Positions 7,912 through 47,078 of a DNA stretch of 64,000 nucleotides are shown here, piece by piece. Numbering within the stretch: position 1 is the stretch's first letter; each line of letters begins with the position of its first letter. This stretch comes from Macrostomum lignano. Lineage: Eukaryota. The DNA lies in the NCBI GenBank assembly GCA_002269645.1, contig NIVC01001760.1, positions 5,277-69,276 of the forward strand. Direction: 5' to 3'. The notes under the pieces were generated by a model. That model saw only the letters and a list, made by a program, of their open reading frames with translations. It was not told the DNA's origin and made no database searches. A program made the translations under genes and the position numbers.

Positions 7912-10900
7912 GTAAGACTACATTTATTAGGTGGCGAGTCTAAATGCGTCATAGTTACTCCCGCCGTTTACCAAAAACTCCTGCTATGCCCTTATCGGAT
8001 TGGAAATAGTTTCCCTGGAGTTAGTTTAACCAAGTTCACAATGTCACGGAGCACTTTGAATTCGCTAACAAAAACAAAGCATGTGATGTCAAGTGACTCT
8101 ATCGTGAGGTAAAGCTTGTTGATTCCATGACCACGTGAGTAACAGGCGGCTTCCTGCCCCGTTTATCCAATCAATTAACCCACCGGTCAGCAAGGCATTG
8201 TGTGTTGACGCAACGGTTCATCCCAGGACTCTGGCAACAATGCCTGGGATTTTTTATGCTAGGGGGGGGGAGTTGGGGACTTAGTGAGACGCTGCCGGGC
8301 GGCACCCGAGAGATCTCATCGCGGCGGCTCTCTCTCTCTCTCTCTCACCCCGCTGGCTCCTGAGCAATGCTGTTGCCCAGGGCTCTAACGGAGAGTTCAG
8401 GTGGGTGTGGGTAGGGGGAAATGAAACCTACCGTCCCCTCAGAAAAGTTATCCCACAGCTTATCGCTATTCTGACCCGTCACGGCATTGAGGCAGCCCTG
8501 CTGCTCTGCCCGCCTGATTGAGAATCAATTTTGCATTCTATAGGGTGGCCGCATGGTTGAATGGTGCATCTCTTTATCATAACTTGAGCTGCTCCAGTGA
8601 GTCAGCCAGGTCCAGCTCTTTCACCTCACTTTGCCGCCAAAGAGGGGGGGTGAATGTACGCTGTTGGCCTCATCATGCATAACAACAGCTTCCTTATTTT
8701 TTCTCGAGACTTTCCTTTCGGTTGAAGATGCCCTGAAGGTTCATACTGTAGTGTACCGGGACTCGGCATTTATGGTCCCTCGGTAGGGGTTCGTGAGCCA
8801 GCTCGCATACAGCCTATCCAACATGAGTGCGTAGTCTTGGCTTCAAACTCATTTATCTTCTGTCTTACTTCTCTCCGCACGCTTAACTTGTTAAACAAAA
8901 AGAGCAAGGTGTGCAGAATTCCAATTTATTTAATTTTGAGAATGCGAGTAGCTGTTCCACAGACAGTATGCAGCTGGGCGCCTCTCGCACACCAAGCCCC
9001 AGCATTTGACACCCTGCCGCTGTGTATCTGGGCGTGTAAAACCGAAACGCTTCTTCTCTAAATCTATTCTTCAATTTGGTAAAGAAATTGTTTAAGATGA
9101 AAAATAGTTGAAAGAGATTGGAACATAGGGGGGTGGGGGCGAACTCAATCGAGGGGGGCGGCGCGGTGCTGCAGGGTGTCAGAGGCCGGTAATTCTCTTT
9201 TCTCTTTACGCTTCTCTCATATTCTGTTTTTTTGAGCCTTTCGGTGGGGGCATGCGACAACAAGCAAGACCACAATGCCCAGCGGTTGGATTTCCACTGG
9301 CGAAAGAGCATCCACTGTAGGCTGCAGCATAATTCAGTTGCAAGGGGGTCGGTCGGTCTGAAGTGGAAGTGAAATAGAAATTGTTCGCCTGCTTTTGCCC
9401 ACTCAGTGGGGGGGGGGCAACGCTCCGTAACAATGGTAGTGCTAGTGATGCGAGTTTGAGTCGAGTAAAATTCTTTTCTCTCTGGGGTACTTTCTTGGTA
9501 ATTACTCTATGCCGTCACGTTGGTTGTCACAACAAGCCTCCAAATTAATGCGGAATCGAACCTATGGTGTCCTTTGGTGCAGTTATACTTTGCTGCTCAC
9601 ATGCAGGCAGTCAGGGAGGCGGCACCAGGTAGGGGTTAATCGGTTAACGATAACGCAGACTGACAATGCTGTACGATCGGAATTGACAAGTGAAGCGTTA
9701 GGTTTTGCAACACAGCTTATTATTAAAAACGTTGCATTGAAAACTGGGTCAAGCTCATAGGCCATAGCACATTGAGCCTCTGTCTTAAAGATGCTCAACT
9801 ACTGATAACACCTGAGCTAGCTAAGCTGAGCAGGATATTATAAATTGCATAATCCTGGCCTACTACAACTGCATAGCTGAGCTCAGAGAGTTGCATCACA
9901 AATTTTCTAGCTAAATATAATTGCACAGGTCTCTGCGCGGGGGAACTGGAATGCCGGTCTATCGCCATCCCACGCATACACTCTCTCCTCTACTGTCCAA
10001 TTCTCCTCTGCTCAGCCCAGAATGCTATATAACTTTCCATCACCTGCCGCCCCAGCAGCAGTTTGTTTCAAAATAGCGCGGCAAGTGGGGGCGATGCAAA
10101 CAGTGAAGTGAAGTGAAATGCCAACCAGCAGCGGAGCTGAGAACCTACCGTCGCAGCCAAATGGACCGACCCGCCAGCAACTGCCGGAGTGAAAGTTCTT
10201 CGTAAATTATTCCGATTGTCTCTGTTGCAGCCAGGGGCGCCGGCCGGCTCCGTGGGTGTGCCAGCAACTAGCAGAGTGAGAGAGGGAGAGGGACGGAGAG
10301 AAAGAGAGAGAGAGAGAGAGAGAGTAGGTCAGGAAGCACAGCGGGACGCCACTCTCCCTGGGGCACCGCAGCGGCGTCCGCCGGCCTAGCAGGTCAGGTC
10401 TCCCGTTGCCCGCCTGCCGAGTGAAAGCTCTCTCTATCGCTATCTCTACCTATCTCTTTTGTTCAAGTTCACTCTCCATTTTCTGCCATTGCGCTGCCAA
10501 CTCTAAAGCTGGTCTCGCTGAATAGTAGTGGGGGCAGGTCACTAGCTCCACTTTCCAATGTTGCATCTGCTGGCTGCCTGACACGGGCTGCTCGCGATGC
10601 AAAGGCCTCTTAAACTGCTTAAAAATTGCGTTGAGGATTGAAGGGAAAAAGTGTGAACAGACACGCTTCAGTTGAACTGTGCGGAACGTTTGAAAGGGAG
10701 AAACTGGAAGCTTTGAGTGGTCTGCTTGCCACGGCTTTTGAGCTGCGTAGTGAAATCTTCAAGTCGCTCTGCTTCTCTGCTTCAGTGAGAGTCTCTGGCA
10801 GCGGGGAGGGAGAAAGTCCTCAAGCTGTTGTGCCGGCCTTTCCCTGCCTGCCCGGGCAGTCTGCAGTTTCTCCCGGCCAGTTCACACATCTGCGGCTGCC

Positions 10901-13695
10901 CTGCTTGCCGTCTGACAAAACTCAGGGACTTCCGACAGGGCAGGCACTCAGCAGCAGCAGCAGCAGCAGCCAGTCCAGTCGCGTCCTGAGCAGGGCGAGA
11001 TGGGGTTGCGATGAGTCTATTGGTTTGATGCAGCCGGCAGAAATCCCAAACTAAGCCGACAATGCCGCCCGAAGGGGATCGCTGATAGACTCTGTCCTGC
11101 AGAGCCGGGAGAAACAACTGCGTGTTGTTGAGAGACATCGGCGGTTGGAAAGGGGCGATGGCTGAAGTGGCGGCCCTGACTGACAATGCCGCTGAGACAA
11201 AGGGCTGCTCCTCCACTCCGCAGCTCTTCTCTGCTCCACACTGCGCGCCTCCCATCAAAAAGAGCCGGACCACGGGAGGGATTCTGTCTCGTCTCTTCCC
11301 ACCTCATCCTCTGTGTTCCGAGTTCGTTCAGCATGAGCCTCATAGCCGAAATCTTAGTTTGGAAAGATTTTTTTGGCCAGTTCTTGACACTCGATAGCTG
11401 GCTTGGCACCGGGAAATCGGGGGATTTTTGAGGAAAAAAATGAGAAATGATTTCAATTCAAAACCATTTGAAAGTTGATCGTCCCGTCGCCTTTGTTTAC
11501 AGTGCAAGCCTGGGCCAAATCGCCTCAAACTTACAGTTTTTAGGCAGCAGCGTCTTTCATTACGACAAGTGGCAGGCCAAGTTGTCACAATGCCATTATT
11601 GCATTCAGGGGGCCATCTTTTGTCACCATCAAATTCCTTGTTAGCGAGGTGAAAGAGTTCAACGCCGGATTTCATGATGAGAGAATGGAAACTAAGAAGG
11701 CTAGTCATCTCCAAGCTTTTGGTGCGACTTCAACCCTCTCAGTTTTCCGTCTGCATCAAAATCTGTGCCCAGCACAGCTGCTGTGTGACTCCAACAAAAC
11801 ACACTGAGTCAATTTTTACTCTCTTTTCATTGTCGATGTGTCAGTCAGCCGGTGAAGAGATGAAGCAAACACGCACAATTTCGCCACTGTACCAATGCCT
11901 ACTGCTTAGCGCCTACTGTCAGGTCAGGTTAGATCAGATACTGCGGCTAATTTCCTAGACCAAATTTGTCCAAGACACTTTAGTCTGAGCCTCAGCCAGT
12001 TAGCAGCGCATATTTGCCTTCTTTTTGTTACTCATTCAGTATTTATTATTGACAGAAAGCTCCGAAATGGCCTATTGTGTGTCAGAGAGGGAGAGAGAGT
12101 GTCTGCATTTCTGGATGCAGCCCGCCGGTGCACAGGGGGCCCGCGAGTTTTCACTTGACCGAACTGGAGTGGCTCTCTAATAATAGCAAATTATAGGGCT
12201 CAGCGACAGCAGCAGCTCAGCTCTCAGCATCTCAACTGGCTGAGTGAAGAATCAAAAACAGTGGCTGGAGAGAGTTGGCAGAATAAACAGTTGGGGGGCT
12301 GAGAAGTGGCGCCTGTTTGCTCTGCTCCCTGCCGCACCATCTCCAGTCATGTTTGACTTGGTCACCGGCTCTACTAACTAACAGTTTGAAAATCTGTGTC
12401 GATCTTTGTTGTTGTTAAAATCAATTCGGTTCCCATATGCCTGCGCAGTTGGATTAAATGAAAACAATGGACTCTCTCGCGCAACACACCTGGTGGAAAT
12501 CGGGGTGGTTTATTTTTATTGGCCCCAATCTGAATCACCCTACCCTACATGGACTTGTTGAGCTCGAGGGCAGCAAGTGACCGGCACCCTTGCCTGTGGG
12601 AGACAGTCCACCAGTCAGTGCGAAATTCGAATTGCACAACAACCCGCCCGACCATTCGGCACTTTACCCGCTGCGCCTGCCGTCGAATTGTTGTTTGTTT
12701 TTGCGAAATTCAACGCGTTTTTTATGACTTTTCCTAGAAAATTAAGTAGCTAAAAATTGCCGTAGGGCTCAAACGACTCCCCCCCTCCGCCAACGCCGTT
12801 TCGTGACGCAAACTGAGCACACGATTGGAGGCTGAATGCGGGCTCAGAAAGGGGTGACAGGGTGATGCAGTGAGACTAATTCCGCGCACTTAACTTTCAT
12901 ATACGGGTAGTTGGGAGGCGAAAGCGTTAGAATTTATTGCGAATCCATTTATTTATATATTTTTTTCGGGCTGGAAACCCGTGAGCTGGGCTAGCGAAGA
13001 GGAAACAGGAAGCCGGGAAGTGAGGAGAACTGCTCGGGGGATGTGGGTGGCCACCACGCGGATGTCCTCCATCCGTGTGGGATCTGTGCTGCCATTGTGA
13101 TCCTCACTGTGCTTTCTCTCTCTCTCTCTCTATACTTTTTCATCGGGCTCAAATTATCCCACCATAACCTTTACCTCGTCCTAGATCCATATTTTTACCT
13201 TCTATCGAGTCGTGCACGTCTGCTCAGTCGGGGCTGACCCTGCGATTGGGGCTGTCACGCATTTTGCTGCCGTGAGCTGCAGCAGCAGCAGCAGAGCAGT
13301 GCTCACTTTGCTTCTTCCGGAAAACACGCAACGATGTGGGTGGGAGAAAAATTGGCGTGTTCCCCTGAGCTAATCAGCTTTGCGCCCACAGAATCCCGCA
13401 TAGCGACAATGGGATGATGAGGGAGCCGATGCTGGCGGGCGGGATTAAGAGGGGAAGAGCCTGATGAGGAATCAGTGCGACTCCTGCCTGTCCCCGTTCT
13501 CATCCGGCCATGTAAACTAAAGATTGATAGGAGTTGGATTAGCTGGGATGCGATCAATGGATTAAATATTGAAAGGGAAATTATGCGAGCTATCAATAAA
13601 TCAAAGATGAGCGCTGGCTTAAATGCTTGAAATTGAGATAAATTTAATCCAATGTTGCAGAATAAGTACAGGAACGGATTATTAGGTATGATAGC

Positions 13696-14398
13696 AGGTA
13701 CAAGAACCGGTAATTAGGTGCGGGAACAGGTACAAGAACCGGGTAATTAGGTGTGAGAACAGTTACAAGAACCGGTAATTAGGTGCAAGAACAGGTACAA
13801 TAATCAGTAATTAGGTGTGAGAACAGGTACAAGAACCGGGTAATTAGGTGCGGGAACAGGTACAAGAACCGGGTAATTAGATGCGGGAACAGGTACAAGA
13901 ACCGGGTAATTAGGTGCGGGAACAGGTACAAGAACCGGGTAATTAGGTGCGGGAACAGGTACAAGAACCGGGTAATTAGGTGCGGGAACAGGTACAAGAA
14001 CCGGGTAATTAGGTGCGGGAACAGGTACAAGAACCGGGTAATTAGGTGCGGGAACAGGTACAAGAACCGGGTAATTAGGTGCAAGAACAGGTACAAGAAC
14101 CGGGTAATTAGGTGCGGGAACAGGTACAAGAACCGGGTAATTAGGTGCGGGAACAGGTACAAGAACCGGGTAATTAGATGCGGGAACAGGTACAAGAACC
14201 GGGTAATTAGGTGCGGGAACAGGTACAAGAACCGGGTAATTAGGTGCGGGAACAGGTACAAGAACCGGGTAATTAGGTGCGGGAACAGGTACAAGAACCG
14301 GGTAATTAGGTGTGGGAGCAGGTACAAGAACCGGGTAATTAGGTGTGGGAGCAGGTACAAGAACCGGGTAATTAGGTGTGGGAGCAGGTACAAGAACC
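13696..14398. repeat. 33-bp minisatellite (GTACAAGAACCGGGTAATTAGGTGCGGGAACAG)n in PRDM1 intron
   Basis: About 21 tandem units. Confidence 0.96.
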
Positions 14399-14490
14399 AA
14401 GAACAAGTACAAGGTGTTGGCACAGAGATTTACGGGAACAAAGGCTTACACTATTAATAATTTTCTAATTTAAATTCTTTCAACCCGCAG

Positions 14491-14845
14491 GCGGCCACGG
14501 TGTGGAGTCGGGATGCCATTCCCAGGGGCACTCGATTCGGCCCGCTAAAAGCGCCCCTAGCAACGGTCGCCACGGACAGATGCTGGCGGGTTCCCAGATC
14601 CGCGTCCGGCCAGCTTCAGCCGGGGTCAGCTGAGGTCAGCTATTATGACGTGACCTCTCCCAGGCGCTGCAACTGGCTGGCTTGTCTGCGCCAGTCGGCC
14701 AGAGACTTCAACGTCGTTGCGGCGATGCGCGGCGATGAGTTGTACTTTTACACTGTCGAATCGGTGGGCTGCGACCGCGAGCTGGTGGCCTGGTACGGGG
14801 CGGACCTGCTGCGGCTGGCCTCGGCGCGGCCGAGGGATCGGCCAG
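14491..14845 (+). CDS. PRDM1: PRDM1/Blimp-1 PR/SET-domain exon
   Basis: Acceptor TTCTTTCAACCCGCAG|14491; AATVWSRDAIPRGTRFGPL...NWLACL...FNVVA...ELYFYTV...ELVAWYG matches PR domain; donor G|GTGAG at 14845/14846, phase 1. Confidence 0.9.
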
Positions 14846-14894
14846 GTGAGAATTAGGGGAATCGAAGTGGATTAGTAGGATTAGGATTTGAATT

Positions 14895-15280
14895 GAAATA
14901 TTGGGATTTAAATTGGGAGATTGGGATTCGAAGTGTGGGAGATTGGGATTCGAACTGTGGGAGATTGGGATTCAAAGTGTGGGAGATTGGGATTCAAAGT
15001 GTGGGAGATTGGGATTCGAACTGTGGGAGATTGGGATTCGAACTGTGGGAGATTGGGATTCGAACTGTGGGAGATTGGGATTCGAACTGTGGGAGATTGG
15101 GATTCGAAGTGTGGGAGATTGGGATTCGTGTGGGAGATTGAGATTCAAGTGTGGGAGATTGGGATTCGAACTGTGGGAGATTGGGATTCGAAAGTGTGGG
15201 AGATTGGGATTCAAGTGTGGGAGATTGGGATTCAAGTGTGGGAGATGGATTCAATGATTGGGATTCGAACTGGAAGATTG
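14895..15280. repeat. ~22-bp minisatellite (TGTGGGAGATTGGGATTCGAAC)n
   Basis: Tandem units with length variants, starting ~50 bp after the exon donor. Confidence 0.93.
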
Positions 15281-15688
15281 GGAGTAAAAGAATTAGAAAA
15301 CAACTGAGTTTTCATAGTAATGCCCAGCAATGGCAGCATATTATATAGCAATCATAAATGATAATAAAGGCCAAATAATGTAGCTCTCAGTACAAAACTT
15401 AAATTTGAGCTGCAAAGCCCAGTGAGCCTTCATTCGTATTCCTTGTCGCAAGAGGAAGAGACACTGGCAATAAAACTCCCCACAATACTGGGCAGACTGG
15501 CTGCATCAGATAACGATGGGAAACGGTGGCCAGGTGATGCCCGGCCGAGATAAACTCAGCTGGGAGTCTTATTGGGGAACAATGGCAGTGGCATGGGAAA
15601 ACGGAGAATGCATTAGCAAATGTTACAAAACAGCTCTGGCAATATTTGATACATGCGCACAGAAATATTTTCTCAATTCAATTGGCAG

Positions 15689-16790
15689 AATCTTCGGCCG
15701 AGTCGCACCAGTCTCCGGCAAAAAAGACAAAGCAACACCACCACCAGCAGCACCAGCAGCCGGCGTTGCCATTCTCCATCGAGAGGCTGACTGGCGACCC
15801 GGAGCTCGCGTCGGCAATGCAGCGGCAGTCGGCTGCGCTCTCCTTTCCCAGGCCGCCGCCTCCGCCGCACCTGCCGCACCTGCCGCACCTGCCGCCGCCG
15901 CCACCGCCGAAAGCCGGCCTGCACTGGCCGTACAACTCGGAGCTGCACAGCCAGCAGCACTCGCCAATGTTCGCCGCAGCCTCGGCGGCCGAGCAGCGCT
16001 GCCGAGAATTCGGCCACCCGCCCGTCCTGCCGCCGCCTGTGCCGCCGATTCCGCCGGCGCACTTCAACGACCAAGCGGCCGCGGCGGCGGCGGCGGCAGC
16101 GGCGGCGGCATCACTGTTTCCCTGCGGCCGGCCGCCCATCCTGCCGCTGCCGCTGCTCACCCAGCTGTACGCCAGCAGCATGGGCCTCCTCAACCTGCCG
16201 CTGTGGCCGCAACCGCCGCCGCGCCGCCGTCTCATTCAGTGGCGCCACCGCTGCCGGCTGTTCCATCGGCTTCGCCGAGGTCAAGCCAGCAGGCGCCGCA
16301 CCAGCTGCCGCCGCCGCCGTCGATGCCGCCGCAGCCTCTGCCGGCACATAACAGCGGTCAGCATCGCCGTGCCGCTGCCATGGCGAGCCCGACTGGCCCC
16401 GCGGCCGCAGCGGCGTTGGCGGCGGCGGCTGCTGCTGCAGCCTCCACTTCGTCTGGAGCTTCGCTGTCAAGCAGCCTCCGCTGATTGCAGCACGCGCAGC
16501 TGCGGCGCCGGCGGCCGCTGTCGAGTCCCCGTCGAGCGGTCGACCTCGGCACAATCGGCGTCGCGACGCTGGCGCCTCGCCGTCGAACGCGAGCAGCGAG
16601 GACGCACCGGTGCAGCACTGGCCTTCAGGCCCAGGGCGAACACGATCCGTCGGTCTTGCAGCAGTGGTCGGACAACGGGACATTCTAGACGCAGGCAACG
16701 TACGCGAGTTCGGCCGCTGCCACGAAGGTGACGCGGACGCACACGGGCGAGCGGCCTTTGCGACCTGATTGCGCGACGGCTCACGGGGGA
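15689..16790 (+). pseudogene. PRDM1: Truncated, indel-bearing second copy of the PRDM1 last exon (duplicated block 15345-~16620 matches 23689-~24960)
   Basis: Near-identical to 24045 onward with the same phase-1 acceptor; frameshift near 16210; sequence decays into scrambled remnants of ZF1-2 at 16620-16790. Probably an alternative haplotype or assembly artefact. Confidence 0.75.
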
Positions 16791-17668
16791 GACACCCTGG
16801 ACCGTGTCGGCCGGTCGTACTTGCTCGGGGTCGACACCCGTTAACTCTTCGGTCGCCAAGTCGCGCTGGGCCGTCAGCGGAGTCTGCGAAAGGTGCGGCC
16901 CGTCACTCCCCTCCTCCGGGCGCCGCGCGAGGCCAGGATCCACTAAGAGAGACAGACCCCGGAGCCTCCCCAACAAGGGACCCCCCAACTCACACAGCTC
17001 AAAACCCCGCACAGCCAACAACACGCACTCAAACGCCGCCTGCAGCACCGAAGGCGGGACCCTCCGACACCTCCCGGAACCACCACCAGAACCTCTCTTC
17101 CGCCCATACTGATTGCACAGAAACGACACAGACACTGCTAAGAATCTAGACAACTGCTCAGGCACACTCACACCAGCCCCATCAAGAAACCTCGCCACCT
17201 CCTGAACCACCAGGCAAGCTCCTTCACTATCCCCAGCCCTCAACCGCGCCAGCAGCGCACCCCTCAGCCGCCTACACTCAGCAAGCGCAGCCGGAGCCAA
17301 TAACTCGGCTGGGATCTCCGCGTGAACTGGAGCTTCCCCTGCGGCGCTTCCCTTAAGACTAGCCAAAGCTAACCTGACCTGCTCGGGCAACTCAACGTCA
17401 GGGGGAGGATTGAAAAAGTAGGCGTACTTTAACACCCCTTGACACGCTGCCTCCCAACCCGATCGTATACTTCCCGAAACACTGGGTCAGATAAAACGCA
17501 CATCGCCATCACGTCTCGCTGAGACTCCGGAGACTCTACCTCGGCAGGACAGACGCGGGGCCGCTTTGAGTACAGACGACTACACGCTGCCTCAATCTCC
17601 GCAGAGTTAGCAGTCCGACCCACGCCTAACACGCCATACAAATCAGTCGGTGTCGTTGGCGACGACAT
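16790..17668 (-). CDS. E1 ORF3: HPD-less J-like domain plus uncharacterised helical domain (1-nt frameshift at G-run 17435-17438; true 3' end lost)
   Basis: ATG 17668; DLYGVLGVGRTANSAEIEAACSRL...MCVLSDPVFREVYDRVG has J-domain helix I/II/IV signatures; continues in ORF 16467-17435 if one G is added; C-terminal part aligns with E2 ORF3. Confidence 0.75.
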
Positions 17669-18005
17669 GGTCCTCCTGCAATGATGACATTTAAACCCAA
17701 TCACTACCTATGCCTTGCGGACTAGCAACTGTGACCCTGACCTGACCCATCCTATGACATGTTTATTTTACAATACGATTGAGAACGCTTCTTGCCTAGC
17801 ATACTTTGTAATTTTAATACATTTAATGTTTTTTACGTGCTTTCCATGCGTTCCATTTTATGATTTTTTTGTGCTTTGGGGTTGTATCATTTTTTTCATT
17901 TTAGGTTATTTTAGGCTTTCTACCATAGACAACAGCGTGGAGGCATTAATACAAGTGCATATTAAAAATCAATTTATGACGACCGCCTTGTGAGCCCACT
18001 GCGAA

Positions 18006-21000
18006 TTAACGATACAATACCGGATTCCCGTAATACGCTGGGGGCACACCCCGACGCTCGCGCAGTCTGCGCGGAGACACGGCTGGCGCCGCTGGAGCCA
18101 CCGGTGCGCATGGCGCAACTGGCGTTCCCGGCCCTACTATCCCATGCCGAGGCCCAACGGCAACTGGTGGCACCACATACGAGTAAAACTCCTCCTCCTC
18201 CTCAAGTTCCGGCTCTTTAGTCGCCGGCCCCGCGGGCTCCTGTCTGCACCCTGCCGGCTCAGGCGGATGCGCCGACCGGCGCTGCACTGCCGTATGCCTA
18301 TTCATCAACCTGAACTGCTCAGGCCGCTCGGGTACTTTTCGCAAATTATTATAATGCACTATTTTGCTCTTTCCCCTATTGGCGTGCTTTACCCGGTAAT
18401 TCAAATCGGATATCTTCTCTAACACCTTCGCCGGCCCCTTCCAATTGCAATGGAACTTGGCTGCCTCCCCTGCCTGCAGCGCAGGCGAGTATTCTAGGAC
18501 GGCATCCCCAACTTCTATGGCCGGGCCTCGCACCCTTGAGTCGTACAGCACTTTCTGTTTCCTCTGGTACTGCTGCAGGTTGGTCCGCACCTGCGAATGA
18601 GCCTCAGCCAGACTATTACCTAATGACTGAACATACGCCGGAGCACTGGCAGGAATGGACTCAGGCAAGGTTCCAATGTCCACTGGAAGCCGCATCTCCC
18701 TGGCGTACAGCATGTAGTACGGGGTGTACCCCGTGCCTCTGTGAACGCTGCTACGGTACGCCATGAGAGACGGGTGGATCAGATCCTCCCAGTCTCCTTC
18801 GCCCACCGACTCACTCATCCTGCACTTGATCATTGACTTCAACGTCTTATTGAAACTCTCAGCCTGACCATCAGCCATCGGGTGATAGGAGGACGTTCTG
18901 CATTTCTTAACGGCAAGCAACCGACACAACTGCTTCATCAAAGCCGACTCAAAATTGGTGCCCTTATCGGTGACTAGAAATTCAGGACAACCAAAGTGCG
19001 CAATCCAGTGATCAAAAATCGCTCGCGCCACCGTCGGGGCTCGCTGATTCGACAAGGGCACCGCCACCGGCCACTTAGTAAAAGAATCCTGGATTGTCAG
19101 CACGAATCGATTGCCACCTCTGGACTTGGGCAACGGCCCGACAATGTCACTCATGATCCTCTGGAAAGCTCCTTCCGAGCAGATTGGCTGCAAAGGCGCC
19201 CGGTTGCTGCGCCCAGGCTTCGCCTTCGCACAGTGGACACAGCTCCGGCAATACTCTTCCACGGAACGACTCAGCCCCGGCCACCAGTATCTCGCCTTCA
19301 CTTTCTCTTGTGTCTTCCTAACCCCAAGGTGCCCTCCTGCAACCCCATCATGAAGCTCACTGAGCACTTTCGGCAGCAAAGCCGGCGGCAGCAAGATCTT
19401 TTTCTGGCACCCACTCCCGGGACTCTGAAAATACAACAGATCAGACTCTACTCTTATCAGCTGCCGTTGTGCCCACAGCACACGCTCCTCCCACGACATC
19501 ACTCTAGGCGCACTGGGGTTCGAACCCGGGTCCAGGGCATAGGAGCGGACAGCTGCAAGCTTCTTCTCGGCCACTTGCGCCTGCTGGACTTCCTTCGAAG
19601 ACAGCCCACTGCCAAACACCGCGTTCACTACTGGCACATTCTCGCTAAACTGGCAGCTAGGGCAGCTCTCATGGCCAGCGTGTTTTCGGTACTTGCGAGA
19701 CAGCGAATCAGCGTTGCCGTGCTCCTTGCCTGGCCTGTGAATGATCTCAAAGTCGAAGTTCTGGAGCGACTCAAGCCACCTTGCGCACTGACCCTCTACG
19801 TCCTTCAGACTGGCTAGCCACTGCAAAGCTTTGTGGTCTGAACGAACAGTGAACTTTCTACCTAACAAATAGTACCTATACTTTTTGACGAAGTGCACGA
19901 CGGCAAGCAACTCTAACCTGGTGGTGCAATAATTTTTCTCCGCCGCATGAATCATCCTAGACCCGTAAGCGATCACCTTCTCACGGCCATCTGCTTGACG
20001 CTGTGACAGGACGGCTCCCAGCCCGACGCGCGAACTGGCGTCCGTGTCGAGGATGAACTCCCCGGCACCAGGCGAAAAATCCGGGAATGCCATCACATTC
20101 GGTGAACACAAAGCGTCTTTCAGCCTGCAAAACGAGCTCTCCTCTTCACTACCCCACTCAAACTTCACTCCGTCTGCGGTTAACCTATACAGCGGCGCTG
20201 CAATCTCTGAAAACTGCGGGATAAATGACTGATAGTAGGCGCACGTACCCAGGAATGCCTGCACCTTCTTGGCGCTACATGGCCTCGGCCAATTCTGGAT
20301 CTCCTCGCACTTGCTCGGATCCGTTGCGATCCCCTCCTGAGAGACGATGTGGCCCAGAAACTTCACCCGCTCTGCGAGGAACACACACTTGGCGGGCTTC
20401 AGCTTGACATTGGCATCCCTCAGGCACTGGAAAACATGCTTCAATCGCTCGAGATGCTGACCCACCGACTTGGCGAACACGACTATATCGTCAAAGTACA
20501 CCAGGCACTCCTTCCAGTTAACCTCAGACAGGGCCATAGACATTAGCCTGGCGAACGTAGCGGGAGCATTGCGCAAGCCAAAACTCATGCACTTCCAGGC
20601 GAACTGACCCCTGTTGGGTACCACGAACGCCGTTTTCAACTGGTCCTTCGGCTCAATCGGGCACTGATGATAGCCGGAGGCCAGATCCATCGTCGAGAAA
20701 ACACAGTTCCCTCCTAGCGCATCAAGCGTCTCGTCCATCCGCGGCGGTGGGTAAGGATCTGGCACTGTGACCTCGTTAAGGCGCCGATAGTCTAGACACA
20801 ACCTCAAGCTACCGTCGGCCTTTTTAACCGGCACGATCGGGCTCGCCCACGGAGAGTAGCAGGGATAGATGCGATCCTGCTGCAACAACTCATCAACCTG
20901 CTTATCAATTTCCTCCTTCCAGCGCGGTGGAATCCTACGCGCGGGCTGACTTACTGGCTTGGCGTTGCCGGTGTCAATCTCATGCGCCATCAAGTGTGAC

Positions 21001-21942
21001 TGTCCCAACTCCGAGCTATCCCTGGCAAAGACATCACGATTCCGAGCCATCAGGCGCTCAAACTCGTGCTTCTCATCGCCCGTCAGGCCACATCCTCCCC
21101 ACTCCTTGACATCGCTGAGGGGGTTCCAGTCGTCTCGGACACTCTCCACCGAGTTCACCTGCCACCCAGCTGGCTGCTGGGCCGCCACTGGGGAGAACCA
21201 ACCAATTCGGCTTCCCTTCCTTAATGACAGACTGCATCCTGACGTGTTCAACACCCTGACAGCCAAGCGACCGTCCCCGTCAGGCATCTGTACCGATCTG
21301 GCCACCATCTGCTCGTTACTCACTCTCCTCTCAGACTCCACAATGCCTAGGAACTGAACCCCAGAGGGAACCCTTCTCTGCAACCTGACGTGCACCACCT
21401 TCTCTTGACCTGCATTGAACTGCTCAGGCTGACTCAGCACCAGACGGCAAAGACGCGGCTTATCTGCTGATAAGCGAAACGGATACACACAGGATGCAGT
21501 CTGCAAGCAATTCCTAGCAAAGTCAATCGCCATCCGTGTCTCACGAAAAAGTCAGTGCCCAGAATACATGCCACAGCCAGTTCCTCGACCACAGCGAACT
21601 CGTGCAAAAACTCGGTGTCCCCAACAGAAAACTTCATCGTCACCATTCCATGTACAGCAATCGGTTCCCCATTGGCAGCGAAAACGGAAAAATTCGGCAA
21701 ATTCGGCAATAAGTCAATGTCGGCTTTTTTAGACTTCAGGAAACGGTTGCTTAACAACGACACGGTGGCCCCGCTGTCAAGCAGACATGCAATCGGGGGC
21801 CCAAACCTAAACTGTGCATCCACATAGCCCAGTCCCTGCCGACTCAGCACACTCTGGGACAAGGCCGCGGCCCCCGATGCACCCGGATTCACTGACGCTG
21901 GGGCCCGGACGGGTGCCCCGGCCGAGCCCCAATCCGTTTCCC
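18006..21942 (-). CDS. E1 pol (protease, RT, RNase H, integrase) with two apparent 1-nt deletions
   Basis: LLDSGATVS protease (ORF 21434-22066); RT YFDD, RH LDTDAS/TRLELLAVV/SDH, INT HHCC, DDE and GPY/F-like NWKGP (ORF 18006-21533); frame breaks upstream of the protease and near 21533. Confidence 0.95.
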
Positions 21943-22868
21943 GAACCCGACTGGTCCCACCGACGATAGCAGCGGTTGCGCATGTGCCCTGACTGGCCAC
22001 ACTCCCGGCAGACCACTGCATTACGGCACCGAGCCGTAGTATGCCCTGTCTGCAGGCACCGACCACACTGCCTCTGCTGCTGACTCTGCTCAGGGGCTCG
22101 ATGCTGCAAGCTCACTTTTGGCTGCTCAGACCTTGCTGTCGCCATCGGCGCAGTGGGCGCTGCAGCACTTGCTTTTAGCTGAGCCACTTCCGCTTTCAGA
22201 GCTGCTATCTCGGCGGCTGCCCTGGACTCCTGGCTGTTGCCAGCCGCTGCGGCCTGACCCCCCACCATGTGCACAGCTCGCTTGCCCTCGGGCTCCATCA
22301 GAGCCAACGATGCCCTCACTTGACGCACCCGCCTAATAGCGTCCTGGAGCGTCTCTGGCGCTTGCAGCAGCACGCTCTCCAGCACCCGGGCTGGCACCCG
22401 AATCCCCTTCAAAAACCTGTCTTTCACCAACTCTTCTCGCTGGGCCGCTGGCAGCATTGGGTACGATTTTCTCATAAGCTCCTTGAGCACGTCTGCATAT
22501 TCTTCAATGGGCTCGCCATCTTTCTGATTCCTACTCTGGAACTCGGTCTTGTAATCTTGAGCAGTCCTATTCTCATCAAACCTAGCCTCTAGCTGCTCAA
22601 CAAACTCATCATACGGCAAATCATCGGCCAACTCAAGATTCGCAACAGCCTTAAAAGCAGTATTAAAGTCAAGCAGACTGAGCAGCGCCTGCTTGCGCTG
22701 ATCCCCTAGAATATGAGCCGCCTCACAATACCCTGTGAATTGTTGCATCCAAAGGGCAAAGTCCTGTGTGGGCACGTACTTATTTGGCCTCGGCACCCGC
22801 TGTGCCACATTAAGTTCGTTTTGCAGACGCGCCGTCAGGGCGTCAATCAGATCGTCTAAATTGGCCAT
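21807..22868 (-). CDS. E1 gag
   Basis: MANLDDL start (ATG 22868); retrotransposon capsid-like FALWMQQFTGY..; knuckles CGRCLQTGHTTARC and CRECGQSGHMRNRC. Confidence 0.92.
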   Translation of the reverse strand: MANLDDLIDALTARLQNELNVAQRVPRPNKYVPTQDFALWMQQFTGYCEAAHILGDQRKQALLSLLDFNTAFKAVANLELADDLPYDEFVEQLEARFDENRTAQDYKTEFQSRNQKDGEPIEEYADVLKELMRKSYPMLPAAQREELVKDRFLKGIRVPARVLESVLLQAPETLQDAIRRVRQVRASLALMEPEGKRAVHMVGGQAAAAGNSQESRAAAEIAALKAEVAQLKASAAAPTAPMATARSEQPKVSLQHRAPEQSQQQRQCGRCLQTGHTTARCRNAVVCRECGQSGHMRNRCYRRWDQSGSGNGLGLGRGTRPGPSVSESGCIGGRGLVPECAESAGTGLCGCTV

Positions 22869-22972
22869 GGCTACAAAAACACAGAGACAACCGAAGCAAA
22901 CAACACACAAATAAACTAGGCAACACACACAACCCTAAACACACGGCAGGACAGCAGGGGAGAGGACCGCTG

Positions 22973-22990
22973 ATCCTGGTCACGGCACCA
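22973..22990 (-). promoter_or_regulatory. E1 primer-binding site, tRNA-His
   Basis: TGGTGCCGTGACCAGGAT, 2 nt after the LTR end, complementary to the invertebrate tRNA-His 3' end (ATCCTGGTCACGGCA-CCA). Confidence 0.85.
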
Positions 22991-22992
22991 CT

Positions 22993-23688
22993 TGTTGTGT
23001 CTCGGCCTAATGGCCGCTGGACGGGTCAAGGTTCGGGCCCTCCCCGCCTGAGACACCCCGGTCCCAGCCCTCACCCCGGCTATTCCTACCCTGTCTCGCT
23101 CGGTTCGGCGAGAGTTCGCCTGACCGAACACCCTGGGATCGGCGAGAGTTCACCGTTCCCAGGTCCCTGCAGATCCCGGCCCCACGCGGCAACCCAGAAG
23201 AACGAAAGCTCGAGCTCACCTCCTCTTGATATATCGAGTTACTAACGAAGCGTTTATTGGCCCGAAGCAGTTATTGGCACGCGAAGGCAGAGGTACGCCG
23301 ATGAACGCAAAAACAGTAAGAACGAAGCGGACACCAATAGAGAGCAAACGTGGAGCGCAGCCCGCTCAGGGCTAGCATTTAAATAATACACAAAAAAGGG
23401 GGAGGGGTGGGGCAGAATGGAGACGGCGAGCCAAACCCTGGGCCCAGCCGGCTTATCAGCCAGCCAGCCAATACGAGCAGCCCAGGGTGAGGCGGGCAAC
23501 GAGGGAGGGGGGCACCCAGATTGGACAGAGATTGGGCCGGGGGCTGGGTGCAAAGGGCTAGGCCAGGGTTGAGACTTACGCCTCTCACAAACCCTGGCCC
23601 GGGCGCGAGACGGGGGACGGGGCGGGGTGGCATGAAAACTGAAAACAAAAGTACGAGTACATACACACTGGAAGGGCGCAGCCCAACA
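22993..23688 (-). repeat. E1 5' LTR (696 bp)
   Basis: TGTTG...CAACA termini; TATTTAAA (~23377-23384), AATAAA (23253-23258) and splice-donor-like AG|GTGAGC (GT 23219-23218) on -; host sequence resumes at 23689. Confidence 0.85.
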
Positions 23689-24044
23689 ATAGCAATCATA
23701 AATGATAATAAAGGCCAAATAGTGTAGCTCTCAGTACAAAACTTAAATTTGAGCTGCAAAGCCCAGTGAGCCTTCATTCGTAAATCGTAGTTCCTTGTCG
23801 CAAGAGGAAGAGACACTGGCAATAAAACTCCCCACAATACCTGGGCAGACTGGCTGCATCAGATAACGATGGGAAACGGTGGCCAGGTGATGCCCGGCCG
23901 AGATAAAACTCAGCTGGGAGTCTTATTGGGGAACAATGGCAGTGGCATGGGAAAAACGGAGAATGCATTAGCAAATGTTACAAAACAGCTCTGGCAATAT
24001 TTGATACATGCGCACAGAAATATTTTCTCAATTCAACTTGGCAG

Positions 24045-25729
24045 AATCTTCGGCCGAGTCGCACCAGTCTCCGGCAAAAAAGACAAAGCAACACCACCAC
24101 CAGCAGCACCAGCAGCCGGCGTTGCCATTCTCCATCGAGAGGCTGACTGGCGACCCGGAGCTCGCGTCGGCAATGCAGCGGCAGTCGGCTGCGCTCTCCT
24201 TTCCCAGGCCGCCGCCTCCGCCGCACCTGCCGCACCTGCCGCACCTGCCGCCGCCGCCACCGCCGAAAGCCGGCCTGCACTGGCCGTACAACTCGGAGCT
24301 GCACAGCCAGCAGCACTCGCCAATGTTCGCCGCAGCCTCGGCGGCCGAGCAGCGCTGCCGAGAGTTCGGCCACCCGCCCGTCCTGCCGCCGCCTGTGCCG
24401 CCGATTCCGCCGGCGCACTTCAACGACCAAGCGGCCGCGGCGGCGGCGGCGGCAGCGGCGGCGGCATCACTGTTTCCCTGCGGCCGGCCGCCCATCCTGC
24501 CGCTGCCGCTGCTCACCCAGCTGTACGCCAGCAGCATGGGCCTCCTCAACCTGCCGCTGTGGCCGCAACCGCCGCCGCCGCCGTCTCATTCAGTGGCGCC
24601 ACCGCTGCCGGCTGTTCCATCGGCTTCGCCGAGGTCAAGCCAGCAGGCGCCGCACCAGCTGCCGCCGCCGCCGTCGATGCCGCCGCAGCCTCTGCCGGCA
24701 CATAACAGCGGTCAGCATCGCCGCGCCGCTGCCATGGCGAGCCCGACTGGCCCCGCGGCCGCAGCGGCGTTGGCGGCGGCGGCTGCTGCTGCAGCCTCCA
24801 CTTCATCTGGAGCTTCGCTGTCTCAGCCTCCGCTGATTGCAGCACCCGCAGCAGCGGCGCCGGCGGCCGCTGTCGAGTCCCCGTCGAGCGGTCGACCTCG
24901 GCACAATCGGCGTCGCGACGCTGGCGCCTCGCCGTCGAACGCGAGCAGCGAGGACGCACCGGCTGGCGGAGGCGGCGGCCGCGGGAGCCACGCGCTGCCG
25001 TACCCGCTGCGCAAGAAGGACGGCAAGATGCACTACGAGTGCAACGTCTGCCTCAAGAGCTTCGGCCAGCTGTCCAACCTGAAGGTGCACCTGCGGACGC
25101 ACACGGGCGAGCGGCCGTTCAAATGCGACCTGTGCGACAAAGGCTTCACCCAGCTGGCGCACCTGCAGAAGCACAACCTGGTGCACACCGGGGAGAAGCC
25201 GCACGCCTGCTACGTCTGCCACAAGCGGTTCAGCAGCACCAGCAACCTGAAGACGCACATGCGGCTGCACAGCGGCGAAAAGCCGTTCAGCTGCAAACTG
25301 TGCCCAGCCAAGTTCACCCAGTTTGTGCACCTCAAGCTGCACAAGCGGCTGCACACCAACGAGCGACCGTTCGAGTGCCCGAAGTGCTGCAAAAAGTACA
25401 TCAGCGCCAGCGGCCTGAAAACGCATTGGCGCTCCGGTCCCTGCTTTGGCAGCGAGTTGGCCACGGATTTGAATTCCATTCTGAACTCGATTGTCACGGA
25501 CAGCAGCCTGGACAGCAGGGACAGCATCGAGTTCCGCTGCGAGGAACAGTACACCGAGGATGAGGCGGCTGCGGCGGCGGAGGCTGCGGCGGACGAAGTC
25601 GAAGACGATGAGGAGGCCGAAGCGGATGCTGATGAGGCCTACGTTGAGGTTGAGGAAGTTGAGGATTCTGCGGCAGGCGATGAAGCTGACTCGGTGATGG
25701 AGCAGCGGTTGGAAACTGCGAACGCTTGA
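24045..25729 (+). CDS. PRDM1: PRDM1/Blimp-1 last exon: Pro/Ala-rich region and five C2H2 zinc fingers
   Basis: Acceptor TTGGCAG|24045, phase 1; [34 protein letters not shown]...[10 protein letters not shown]...[10 protein letters not shown]...[17 protein letters not shown] is the diagnostic Blimp-1 finger array; TGA at 25727-25729. Confidence 0.96.
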
Positions 25730-27503: not shown

Positions 27504-27744
27504 GTCTCCCTTGCTTTGCGGCGCCAGCTTGCAGGCCTTTTGCCTGTTGTTGCCTTTCTAACTTCCCGTGAAGCTCGCGAGTAGGGAACCAGCCCGCATA
27601 CGGATCTATCAGCAATGCTTTATGGCCCATTGATCGAAAAACTTTATCCAAGCAGGGGTTGGCGGCTGGTGCTGTTGGTTAAGCAGAAATTGAAACGGTC
27701 TTTAGAATTTGAAATTCGTTATGCGGCTCTGCTTCCTGACAAGG

Positions 27745-28056
27745 TGTGTCTCACTGTGCCTCAGTGTGTCTCTACTCAGCCTCAATGTGTCTCACTGTGC
27801 CTCAGTGTGTCTCTACTCAGCCTCAATGTGTCTCACTGTGCCTCAGTGTGTCTCTACTCAGCCTCAATGTGTCTCACTGTGCCTCAGTGTGTCTCTACTC
27901 AGCCTCAATGTGTCTCACTGTGCCTCAGTGTGTCTCTACTCAGCCTCAATGTGTCTCACTGTGCCTCAGTGTGTCTCTACTCAGCCTCAATGTGTCTCAC
28001 TGTGCCTCAGTGTGTCTCTACTCAGCCTCGATGTGTCTCACTGTGCCTCAGTGTGT
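27745..28056. repeat. 41-bp minisatellite
   Basis: Unit TGTGTCTCACTGTGCCTCAGTGTGTCTCTACTCAGCCTCAA, about 7.5 copies. Confidence 0.95.
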
Positions 28057-43350: not shown

Positions 43351-44029
43351 TTGGTTACCGATTTTAGCTAAAACAATTAGCTAACTTGAGATCTAATAAC
43401 ATTCATTCAGTTAGCCCCAGCATCACTAATAGTCATCAATAAGAGTCGGAGGGTGTGTACAGTAGTTGAAATCATCATTCTAAAAATATGAATTAATGGC
43501 ATTATTCAGCTAGGATAATGGCAATCAGTGACGCCATTTTAGACGCGCAGCAATTGAAATGGTTACATGAGTATAATTGTGGCTAGTAGAATTTCACCTG
43601 TGCGCCAGGCTCACTGCAGCTGCCCCACCCAACCGAATAAGCCTTCGGGGCACGCTGGGCCTTCATCTCGGTATCCGGGCAGCCCCGTTTCCCCCAGCAT
43701 TCCGGAACCACCAGACAGACAGCTCCCGCCTCCCATTTGAGTCCCGCCTTCTCCCCAACAGAATCCCTTGGGGGCTGATGACGGGAAATGGCTTCATTTT
43801 CTACACCGGCATTCTTCCGTAAGAAGGCCGTTTGACTCCTTTTCCAGAGCCCGAGCTGGGGGTCGGCCTCCGCCCGGAGACAAGCGCTGAGGATTCCGAG
43901 AGAAAAAATTAAGAAAAAAAGAATTGAGACACAGGAAAAAAACCTATTATCGAACCAGGGACTACTGAAGGGTGCGTCCTGGTCTTCACAGAGCTGCCCT
44001 GGATTGGAAGACGGAAGCGATGGCTCTCC

Positions 44030-44189
44030 CATCTCTTCTCTCTGCTCTCTCTTCTCTCTCCTCTCCTCTCTCTTATCTCTGCTCTCTCTCCTCTCTTCTC
44101 TCGCATCTCTTCTCTCTGCTCTCTCTCCCTTCTCCCCTCTCTTCTATCCTCTCCATTCTGTTCTCTCCCCTCTTCTCTCTCCCCTCTCC

Positions 44190-44259
<70 letters not shown>

Positions 44260-44380
44260 TCTCTCCCCTCGTCTCTCCACTCTTGTTCTCTCTCCTCTCT
44301 TCTCTCTCTCTCCTCTCTTCTCTCCCCTCTTCTCTTCTCTTCTCTTCTTTCTTATCTCTTCTCCCATCTCATCTCTCAGC
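44030..44380. repeat. CT-rich low-complexity tract
   Basis: Polypyrimidine repeats. Confidence 0.85.
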
Positions 44381-45189
44381 CTCAATTCATGTGGATTCTT
44401 CATCTGGCCTTAGAGATAGAAACGTTTGCCAATCCTTGGCCTAAAAGTTTAATGCAGCCACTTTCATAACGCCTAGAATTCAGCATTTTTGATGAAAATC
44501 TCTTTTCGGCGATGCAAAGTCCCTGGCTGGCAACAAAGACCCCGGAGCAGGAAGGAAACCATCTGGGTTATTGAAAACACGGACACGGTCTGCAAGGCTA
44601 CATTGAGACGGTTACAAACCGAGCTCTACTCGGGTCAGCAGGTGCGCGGGTCAAGTGAGGCGGCGGAAGGCCTTCCCGGTCCGCGTGCCGCCAGCCACTC
44701 GGCTGCTCTTCTTTGAGACCGATTTACCGATTTTCTGTTTTTGACTTTTGGCTTCCCCGCTTCTTCCGCCTCGTTTCCGCGGCCCAATTTGTCCGACCGG
44801 CTGCGGCCTTGGCAACCAAAAGGGAGCCCAGCTCAGACTCAGAGCTCCGATCCCTAAGGGATTGCGGGCCGCCGTTTATAATTCGCTATTTTAAACAGTC
44901 AATATGCTAATTTGGCACCTGGAGTCCCGCTTTTTAAAAGAAGTCAAATGCTTCTTTAAGAGATAACTTCTATGGGGGTTGAACGCAGATTAATTGGGAA
45001 TCCGTGGAAGATATGCAAAAAAGACTTGACAACTGGCCTGGAATCTTCCCGGGCATCATCCTGCACCCTGGTATCTAGCGGAACTTGACGTCACAATTTA
45101 TCAATTTGCTTTTTTCTCACCCATCCTGTCTCAATGCTTTTTCCTTCTGCCCATCCTCTTGTTTCATATCTTTCTCCCATTTTATCCAC

Positions 45190-45790
45190 CTCTCTACCTT
45201 TCTCTACACCTCTCTACCTCTCTCTACACCGCTCTACCTTTCTCTACACCCCTTTACCCTTCTCTACACCTCACTACCTTTCTCTACACCCCTCTCCGTT
45301 TCTCTACACCTCTCTACCTTTCTCTACACCCCTCTCCATTTCTCTACACCTCTCTACCTTTCTCTACACCCCTCTCCGTTTCTCTACACCTCTCTACCTC
45401 TCTCTACACCTCTCTACCTTTCTCTACACCTCTCTACCTCTCTCTACACCTCTCTACCTTTCTCTACACCTCTCTACCTCTCTCTACACCTCTCTACCTC
45501 CCTCTACACCTCTCTACCTTTCTCTACACCTCTCTACCTCTCTCTACCTCTCTCTACACCTCTCTACCTTTCTCTACACCTCTCTACCTCTCTCTACACC
45601 TCTCTACCTTTCTCTACACCTCTCTACCTCTCTCTACACCGCTCTACCTCTCTCTACACCTCTCTACCTTTCTCTACACCTCTCTACCTTTCTCTACACC
45701 TCTCTACCTCTCTCTACACCGCTCTACCTTTCTCTACACCCCTTTACCCTTCTCTACACCTCACTACCTTTCTCTACACCTCTCTCCGTT
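45190..45790. repeat. 20-bp minisatellite (CTCTACCTTTCTCTACACCT)n
   Basis: Tandem variant units. Confidence 0.92.
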
Positions 45791-46427
45791 TCTTGTTCAC
45801 TTGCAATAATTACACAAACCTAGTTTGCAAGTTAATAACTGAACAAAGTTATTTAAACTGAATTATATATTTTTTTCGATCCAGTCATTAGGCCTTACAG
45901 CTAGCTAGTCTAAACACTGAATTGGAAGAGACAGACTGTAAGTGAATGGAAGGAGACACAGAGAGAGATGATATACTTGCAGTTTTGGCTCCACCCCTGG
46001 GGGCAAACTTTGGCCAGACTACTTGAAAACAAACTTGCACAGTCCCGGGGCCGATCACTGAGCTGGTGCTTCAGCTCCTTGCGGTCTTGCACAACTGCAG
46101 TAGTATAAGTAGTAGTATATAGTTGAATATATCGCTGTTACTTAGCACCGGTTCCTTCCTGCATGTAGGCTAACTGCCGCCTTAAACCCCTGAGGCGAAT
46201 TCCCTGTGAGCAGGGCTGCAGAGTAAAGGGATGAGAACAGCTGAGGATGCATTGTTCCCTTCGATCCCACTATTTCCGGTTCTCCCAAAGACGCGCTTTC
46301 CCGAACCTGGGTAGAGAATTAAAAATTAAGGCCTTAGATATTTTCTCTGTTTTAAACTTTAAATACTTACTCTTCTCAGTTGCAGAGCCTGGTTCCTTTT
46401 TAGCCTGTTTGACTTGCGTTTTATGCG

Positions 46428-47078
46428 GGCTACCAGGGGTGACAGGAGTAACAGGGGTGACAGGAGTACCAGGGGTGACAGGGCTACCAGGGGTGACAGG
46501 AGTACCAGGGGTGACAGGGCTACCAGGGGTGACAGGAGTAACAGGGGTGACAGGAGTACCAGGGGTGACAGGAGTACCAGGGGTGACAGGAGTACCAGGG
46601 GTGACAGGGCTACCAGGGGTGACAGGAGTACCAGGGGTGACAGGGCTACCAGGGGTGACAGGGCTACCAGGGGTGACAGGAGTACCAGGGGTGACAGGAG
46701 TACCAGGGGTGACAGGAGTACCAGGGGTGACAGGGCTACCAGGGGTGACAGGAGTACCAGGGGTGACAGGGCTACCAGGGGTGACAGGGCTACCAGGGGT
46801 GACAGGAGTAACAGGGGTGACAGGAGTACCAGGGGTGACAGGAGTACCAGGGGTGACAGGAGTACCAGGGGTGACAGGGCTACCAGGGGTGACAGGGCTA
46901 CCAGGGGTGACAGGAGTACCAGGGGTGACAGGGCTACCAGGGGTGACAGGAGTACCAGGGGTGACAGGGCTACCAGGGGTGACAGGAGTAACAGGGGTGA
47001 CAGGAGTACCAGGGGTGACAGGAGTACCAGGGGTGACAGGAGTACCAGGGGTGACAGGGCTACCAGGGGTGACAGGAG
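46428..47078. repeat. 18-bp minisatellite (GGAGTACCAGGGGTGACA)n, left part, interrupted by E2
   Basis: About 36 units; continues at 55734. Confidence 0.96.

Follow-up and report, generated by a model that had tools for sequence, protein, structure and literature searches.

Two retrotransposons in one stretch of the genome of the flatworm Macrostomum lignano end their third gene with a similar domain of about 100 residues, and the question raised by this locus is how the two domains are related and what they might do. The stretch, henceforth referred to as the window, comprises 64,000 nucleotides (64 kb; assembly GCA_002269645.1, contig NIVC01001760.1, positions 5,277 to 69,276 of the forward strand) and carries two Ty3/Mdg4 (gypsy) elements, of which E1 is encoded on the minus and E2 on the plus strand. 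Each contains a third open reading frame (ORF), ORF3, downstream of pol. The resemblance between the C-terminal parts of the two ORF3 products was noticed in an earlier inspection of the letters of the window, henceforth the sequence-only reading, which placed the E1 copy at 16980-17290. The domains were found to occupy positions 16953-17264 on the minus strand (E1) and 54009-54302 on the plus strand (E2), and both had been placed to within ~30 bases. The domain, hereafter the helical tail, is proposed with moderate confidence to be a C-terminal, all-alpha, private domain of ~100 residues that would confer specificity, through partner binding, on an Hsp70 co-chaperone encoded by the elements of a small Macrostomum-specific gypsy clade.

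ORF3 and its J domain

ORF3 of E2 spans 53338-54323 on the plus strand and encodes a J domain with the HPD tripeptide (53338-53540, plus strand), an acidic linker, an HP1-like chromodomain (53787-53939, plus strand) and the helical tail, with one frameshift inside the J domain. Because of that frameshift, the sequence-only reading assigned only 253 codons to this gene; it recognized the downstream piece only and missed the upstream J domain in both elements. The full layout is preserved in L001, which together with L002 represents two further E2 copies taken from assembly GCA_002269645.1. ORF3 of L001 (12953-13933) is an intact 326-codon frame containing the J domain with HPD, the acidic linker, the chromodomain (with a two-residue deletion) and the helical tail. 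The sole diverged relative of the E2 lineage, L006, is a locus from Logan run SRR24204725 that encodes, likewise in an intact frame, the 287-residue protein P0121. Frames of broken ORF3 copies were never joined for searches or models, and the L001 copy was used wherever a full-length protein was required. For annotation, the open frames of broken copies understate the length of the ORF3 gene. An exact look-up of the window ORF3 returned no record.

The J domain of the E2 lineage scored above the curated cut-off of the Pfam DnaJ family (PF00226; 27.8 bits), at 56.2 bits for P0121 (E = 3.7e-15, with an additional Chromo match at 7e-13) and at 37 bits for the N-terminal part of the window copy (E = 3.8e-9). 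The closest PDB matches to the L001 J domain were ordinary cellular ones, namely yeast Ydj1 (E = 7e-12), DnaJ and DNAJB9. ORF3 of E1 (16467-17668, minus strand) is composed of a J-like domain (17462-17644, minus strand), a short linker, the helical tail and an open tail that runs into R1, the left copy of a direct repeat described below. Its J-like domain matched the DnaJ profile over the full length at 23.8 bits (E = 4.7e-5), below the cut-off, and its best PDB match by phmmer was DNAJB13 (E = 5e-6); judged by its sequence, the domain is J-like and falls short of a certified DnaJ member. The J domains of E1 and the E2 lineage share 30% identity over 69 aa (tblastn, E = 0.001). The HPD tripeptide is kept in window E2, L001 and L006 and has been replaced in E1, as it is likewise missing from degenerate J domains of the DNAJB13 type. 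Since E2 ORF3 contains one frameshift, and E1 ORF3 at least one (its J-like and helical parts lie in different frames) in addition to the loss of HPD, both window copies document the family rather than working genes.

The chromodomain of E2 scored 49.2 bits against Pfam Chromo (PF00385; cut-off 25.1), and its best PDB matches were Swi6 (1.7e-10) and HP1-beta (1e-9). When aligned to these two proteins, two of the three positions that we take to form the aromatic cage are aromatic and the third is Val. No Chromo match was obtained by Pfam in ORF3 of E1, and tblastn with E2 ORF3 found no chromodomain in E1, in agreement with the sequence-only reading, which had seen this domain in E2 alone. The chromodomain may have been gained in E2 or lost in E1. 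The Chromo profile likewise gave no match to the pol of either element. Chromoviruses are Ty3/gypsy elements with a chromodomain at the end of the integrase, through which integration is directed to heterochromatin. E2 resembles these as a gypsy-type element with an HP1-like chromodomain; however, its chromodomain is not fused to the C-terminus of the integrase but belongs to ORF3, a gene of its own downstream of pol, where it follows the J domain and precedes the helical tail, and E1 has none.

Both elements show the protease, reverse transcriptase (RT), RNase H and integrase (IN) order downstream of gag by Pfam, as is typical of gypsy gene order, and they are 45% identical in pol and 32% identical in gag. 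Because their mutual pol identity is 45% and none of 120 database relatives exceeds ~43% identity to either of them, E1 and E2 are, on these sequence comparisons, sister lineages within a local clade. Two M. lignano proteins match the pol of E2 at 99% identity. A J or J-like domain occupies an equivalent position after pol in both elements, and ORF3 is accordingly taken to be a shared and old gene; this common position constitutes independent evidence, much stronger than the alignment of the helical tails. The view of ORF3 as an inherited accessory gene of both elements, put forward in the sequence-only reading, was thereby upheld.

The description of the encoded protein as family-wide, on the other hand, proved too strong. 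Seven related elements (pol 39-51% identical), fetched via their pol matches, have neither a J domain nor an ORF3 relative after pol; these comprise L003 from the trematode Paragonimus, L004, L005 and L007-L009 from metagenome assemblies, and L010 from Logan, the last with almost no 3' flank. As judged from the sequences compared, the ORF3 gene so far appears confined to Macrostomum. Two of the seven carry a long ORF of more than 680 aa downstream of pol (L004, 12884-16024; L005, 12558-15203) with no Pfam match on record; this third gene is distinct from ORF3 and uncharacterised.

Directly before the ORF3 start codon, a pyrimidine run followed by AG is present in E2 (53338) and L006 (19), and TTGCAG is present 7 nt upstream of the start in E1 (~17668, minus strand). 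The AG may serve as the acceptor in splicing or trans-splicing of a subgenomic ORF3 mRNA. The spacer between pol and ORF3 is 337 nt long and A-rich (37% A) in E1 (17669-18005, minus strand), and 99 nt long and G-rich in E2.

Similarity, structure and constraint of the helical tail

The tails of E1 and E2 were aligned by hhalign over 104 columns with 29 identities (28%) and 6 gap positions. The alignment is thus nearly gapless, as the sequence-only reading had described, and the motifs listed there (R..L....R.GD..G, GRK, RR, QA and LG.LR.L) are indeed present. Shuffle tests were performed on unselected segments, comparing residues 1-175 of E1 with the 127 residues that follow the chromodomain in E2. 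These returned p values of 0.025 with BLOSUM62, 0.01 with BLOSUM45, 0.09 with PAM250 and 0.03 with phmmer, and p = 0.0012 with a two-sequence hidden Markov model (HMM) built from E2 and one diverged relative. Taken alone, the similarity of the tails is of the twilight-zone kind, weakly above chance and insufficient for homology at the sequence level. Shuffling had been suggested in the sequence-only reading as a check on the alignment; it produced p values as low as 0.0012 and as high as ~0.10, so that it was not convincing by itself.

Structural models were calculated independently from single sequences with AlphaFold2 (AF2), with mean predicted confidence (pLDDT) of 60.8 for E2 and 61.5 for E1. 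Five helices were predicted for both tails, in the same order, with the Gly/basic loop (GRK...RR) between helices 3 and 4. Helix and loop assignments agreed in 80% of columns in the aligned register, with a peak exactly at shift 0, compared to a mean of 53% in shifted registers. The last helix is strongly amphipathic and Leu/Arg-rich (LG.LR.L). Additionally, codon tables trained on the gag and pol of each element were applied to all six frames, and the claimed frame was the best of six for both tails. Over the ~340 bases that follow the E1 domain (open tail, 16611-16952), codon usage singled out no frame.

Constraint on the tail was measured by comparing L001 and L006, which are 79% identical at the DNA level. 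Nei-Gojobori ratios of nonsynonymous to synonymous substitution (dN/dS) were 0.13 for the J domain, 0.29 for the linker, 0.11 for the chromodomain and 0.17 for the part after the chromodomain. Over the first 62 codons of the tail domain, dN/dS was 0.11 (Fisher p ~1e-9). The helical tail is under purifying selection in the E2 lineage, in line with the selection that the sequence-only reading had surmised for ORF3.

Because selection, helix register and coding signal combine with synteny, the helical tails of E1 and E2 are considered probably homologous, a judgement that leans on context more than on the alignment score.

Outside these elements, the tail is an orphan. Pfam searches at E<=10 assigned no family to either tail, and phmmer searches of PDB at E<=10 gave nothing for the E2 tail and four noise matches for the E1 tail. 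Foldseek searches with both tail models returned best E values of 0.8 and 0.15 in PDB and 0.23 in BFVD, all to generic helical repeats; the likeness to designed helical repeats, TPR and 14-3-3 is at noise level. Modelling and fold comparison, also suggested in the sequence-only reading, thus produced five matching helices at low confidence and no known fold in PDB or BFVD. The C-terminal domains of known J-proteins (DnaJ_C, the HscB bundle and the histone-binding domain of DNAJC9) showed no sequence or fold match, although models of such low confidence could hide a match in fold. A word-indexed search of 5.8 billion proteins with either tail found nothing, and P0121 (Logan contig, 77% identical) was the sole true relative among 1.84 billion representatives scanned exhaustively with phmmer. 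A second candidate from that scan, the 1158-aa tandem-repeat protein P0122 with 14 weak stretches, was rejected as a repeat artefact. The absence of a match in Pfam, PDB and Foldseek agrees with the earlier expectation that the tail belongs to no well-known host family.

Possible roles of the tail and competing explanations

Class C J-proteins consist of a J domain, which triggers Hsp70, and a small specialised domain that chooses the client. As ORF3 has this layout, the helical tail is, by analogy, best read as a specificity or partner-binding module. The sequence-only reading had presented the tail as the core effector or substrate-binding module; of the two domains, the obvious effector is the J domain, which recruits Hsp70. 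According to the proposed mechanism, the ORF3 product would be a J-domain protein of class C (type III) layout, expressed from a spliced or trans-spliced subgenomic RNA. Its helical tail would bind a partner, either a protein of the element (such as Gag or integrase) or a chromatin component, and its J domain would bring host Hsp70 to that partner. In E2 only, the HP1-like chromodomain would add tethering to chromatin methylated at lysine 9 of histone H3 (H3K9).

Comparable layouts are found among host proteins. HscB/Jac1, with a C-terminal helical bundle that binds IscU, and DNAJC9, with a helical domain that binds histones H3-H4, resemble ORF3 in placing a small all-alpha domain after a J domain. 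Neither matched the ORF3 tail by Pfam at E<=10, by PDB sequence or among the top 50 Foldseek matches listed, and both are host genes, whereas ORF3 is encoded by a retrotransposon and its J function is predicted from sequence. The large and small T antigens of polyomaviruses offer a second parallel, in which a genetic parasite carries its own J domain, making use of host Hsc70, together with private partner-binding regions. Their genome type is unrelated, however, and there is no similarity to ORF3 outside the J domain; none of the 47 PDB matches listed for the J domain was a polyomavirus entry, and cellular DnaJ A/B proteins lead that list. The env-like ORF3 of errantiviruses and other extra ORFs of LTR (long terminal repeat) elements are likewise located downstream of pol with acceptor-like sequence before the start, but ORF3 of E1 and E2 is without envelope features and carries a J or J-like domain and a helical tail instead, with a chromodomain in E2. 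ORF3 combines two known kinds, a class C J-protein and a gypsy accessory ORF, with a tail that is an orphan domain.

Retroviruses and retrotransposons depend on host Hsp70/Hsp40, and none is known to encode a J-protein. In the literature searched, no description was found of a J-domain gene in an LTR retrotransposon, or of a gene containing J domain, chromodomain and helical tail. DnaJ, a chromodomain and ORF3 all go unmentioned in the 2025 survey of LTR elements in M. lignano (PMC12801592). For plants, MBD5/6 with the J-protein SILENZIO are described as bringing a J domain to repressive chromatin marks at transposons (Ichino et al. 2021, as cited in PMC12918867). The plant system consists of host silencing factors recruited by a separate reader protein, whereas E2 encodes the reader and the J domain in one polypeptide, whose effect may be silencing, anti-silencing or targeting.

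A wider interpretation, in which a flatworm retrotransposon lineage encodes its own Hsp70 co-chaperone, the orphan tail binds an element or chromatin partner, and an HP1-like chromodomain places the protein of one sublineage on H3K9-methylated chromatin, is offered tentatively, as possible rather than probable. If true, it would be the first retroelement-encoded J-protein, and host chaperone machinery would be used for integration targeting, particle remodelling or silencing escape. The combination of a J domain with a private helical domain, and with a heterochromatin reader in one lineage, suggests a new way for a retroelement to direct a host chaperone towards a given target. The tail would be of interest as a small, concrete domain, since its partner could account for how these elements achieve targeting or escape silencing.

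Several observations weigh against the tail being an inherited partner-binding module. The hhalign comparison of the two tails gave P = 0.068 with a probability below 1%, BLASTP with composition adjustment did not report their alignment, and a Smith-Waterman comparison of the full ORFs scored 41, a value reached by ~10% of shuffles (p ~0.10). Confidence in the AF2 models is low (pLDDT ~61), and agreement between all-alpha predictions is easily reached. Selection was shown for the first 60% of the tail only, because L006 is without helices 4-5: at 861-1134 of this locus the likeness to E2 breaks off sharply past the GRK loop, ahead of a stop codon. The short end could be due to a deletion or rearrangement, or could be a natural shorter form without these helices. 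Constraint was measured in the E2 lineage only, with a single E1-type copy at hand, and the J-like domain of that copy is out of frame and without HPD. Partner binding, moreover, is argued by analogy only.

The silence of BLASTP, the shuffle p values of up to 0.09-0.10 and the hhalign P value would also suit a chance resemblance, with ORF3 homologous in the J domain only, the E1 tail replaced or decayed, and the match arising from helical-looking stretches of GC-rich DNA that are rich in Leu, Arg, Ala and Gly. The region is indeed 61% GC with long ORFs in several frames, and ~130 residues of linker and chromodomain are missing from E1, so that at least one large difference between the two ORF3 genes exists in any case. 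The E1 copy is also broken, and its downstream tail carries no coding signal. The match is, however, collinear across the whole domain and occupies an equivalent position in both sister elements, closing a J-protein gene that follows pol. A chance origin is further opposed by the two-sequence HMM (p = 0.0012), by helix/loop boundaries that coincide exactly in the aligned register, and by E1 codon usage, which singles out the claimed frame. Chance resemblance is accordingly regarded as doubtful.

The tail could also be homologous and functional in a different capacity, as a self-association (dimerisation or oligomerisation) or stabilising module, with specificity provided by the chromodomain in E2 or by the acidic linker. 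C-terminal helices are established as dimerising many J-proteins, and the tail models are helical hairpins resembling designed helical repeats, TPR and 14-3-3, albeit at noise level. The amphipathic, Leu/Arg-rich character of the last helix is also in line with such a role. Nevertheless, the tail is the only candidate specificity module in E1, if the E1 protein ever had a target, and self-association as its main role is judged unlikely. Passive carriage of a recently captured host J-protein gene fragment with its own C-terminal domain is very improbable: the J domain belongs to class A/B, as in ordinary cellular proteins, and must ultimately derive from a host gene, and the chromodomain is HP1-like, but two lineages with 45% identical pol and ~30% identical J domains make any capture an old one, purifying selection between element copies is strong, and no cellular protein with the tail was found by phmmer among the 1.84 billion representatives, M. 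lignano proteins being included in the collections. The interpretation of the helical tail as a partner-binding module of an element-encoded co-chaperone is the preferred one.

The two elements and their surroundings

E2 is a complete element. Its 5' LTR (47079-47911, plus strand; TGT...ACA ends) is 99.4% identical to its 3' LTR (54898-55733, plus strand) and is followed by a sequence resembling a primer-binding site (PBS), TGGCATCC..., with the purine tract GGGGACGGGAG located just before the 3' LTR. Intact gag (48020-49096, plus strand; ORF, Pfam) and intact pol (49030-53238, plus strand; protease, RT, RNase H and IN by Pfam, with no chromodomain) lie between them, and a 4-bp target-site duplication, GGAG, flanks the element. 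The insertion lies in a 9/18-bp tandem array (GGTGACAGG-type) at 46287-47086, which continues beyond the element from 55734. In the other two E2 copies from the assembly, pol is less well preserved. The L001 pol was recovered by tblastn in three pieces, and its longest ORF (9782-12853, 1023 aa, GTG start) covers part of the gene only; in L002, pol and ORF3 are each in three pieces.

E1, by contrast, is not a full LTR element (two LTRs with TG..CA ends, PBS, purine tract and target-site duplication): it has one LTR-like end and a PBS, and no 3' LTR. Its gag (21807-22928, minus strand; ORF, Pfam) contains two CCHC knuckles, and its pol (18006-21533, minus strand; Pfam) encodes RT, RNase H and an integrase with a GPY/F module, again with no chromodomain. 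The protease ORF (21434-22066, minus strand) is in a frame different from that of RT-IN, one frame change relative to the contiguous pol of E2. The gag and RT-IN ORFs of E1 are thus intact, with protease in a separate frame and ORF3 broken. In both elements, pol ends in a long low-complexity tail followed by a similar PRRLR...GVP..YY motif and a stop (E1, 18006-18080, minus strand; E2, 53180-53238, plus strand); from its sequence, this motif is a conserved C-terminal pol peptide.

A direct repeat of 1.27 kb surrounds E1, with R1 (15345-16610) as the left and R2 (23689-24962) as the right copy. The two copies are 98.2% identical; R2 is read in frame on the plus strand into an ORF with five C2H2 fingers, and this reading frame is lost in R1. 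Because the repeats have no TG..CA ends and R2 is in frame with the C2H2 ORF, they are probably duplicated host sequence and not LTRs. Inside them, a probable true 5' LTR (22993-23688, minus strand) starts with TGTTGG and ends in ACA ~696 nt on. A PBS-like 19-mer (TGG..., 22972-22990, minus strand), unique in the window, lies 2 nt past the ACA end and ~45 nt upstream of gag. A second copy of this inner LTR was searched for, including on the 3' side, and none was found. With one LTR-like end and a PBS inside the repeats and no second inner-LTR copy, E1 has the appearance of an element that was truncated at its 3' end and is flanked on both sides by copies of a host segment. The sequence-only reading had stated that the two elements differ in LTRs and PBS; the PBS-like sequences do differ, and the part concerning LTRs is unsafe, as the repeats that bracket E1 are not LTR-like. 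Neither PBS was matched to a tRNA, because the window, L001 and L002 are free of tRNA genes according to ARAGORN.

The zinc-finger ORF adjoining E1 (24008-25729, plus strand; 573 codons) consists of a Pro/Ala-rich N-terminal part and five C2H2 fingers (Pfam) and is probably the exon of a host transcription factor. Its PDB matches were generic C2H2 arrays only, and an exact look-up gave no record. The fingers may resemble those of Blimp-1/PRDM1.

M. lignano LTR elements have been reported to respond to heat shock, and Mag, CsRN1 and Gmr1/Osvaldo are the gypsy clades listed for this species (PMC12801592). A link between the elements described here and the heat-inducible LTR families of that work was considered and rejected, as the window contains no canonical heat-shock elements. 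Around the elements, many minisatellite arrays (periods of 33, 22, 41, 10/20 and 24 bp) were observed, together with a low-complexity tract rich in CT, at 13675-14530, 14870-15256, 27704-27990, 45029-45860, 56334-56957 and 44008-44363.

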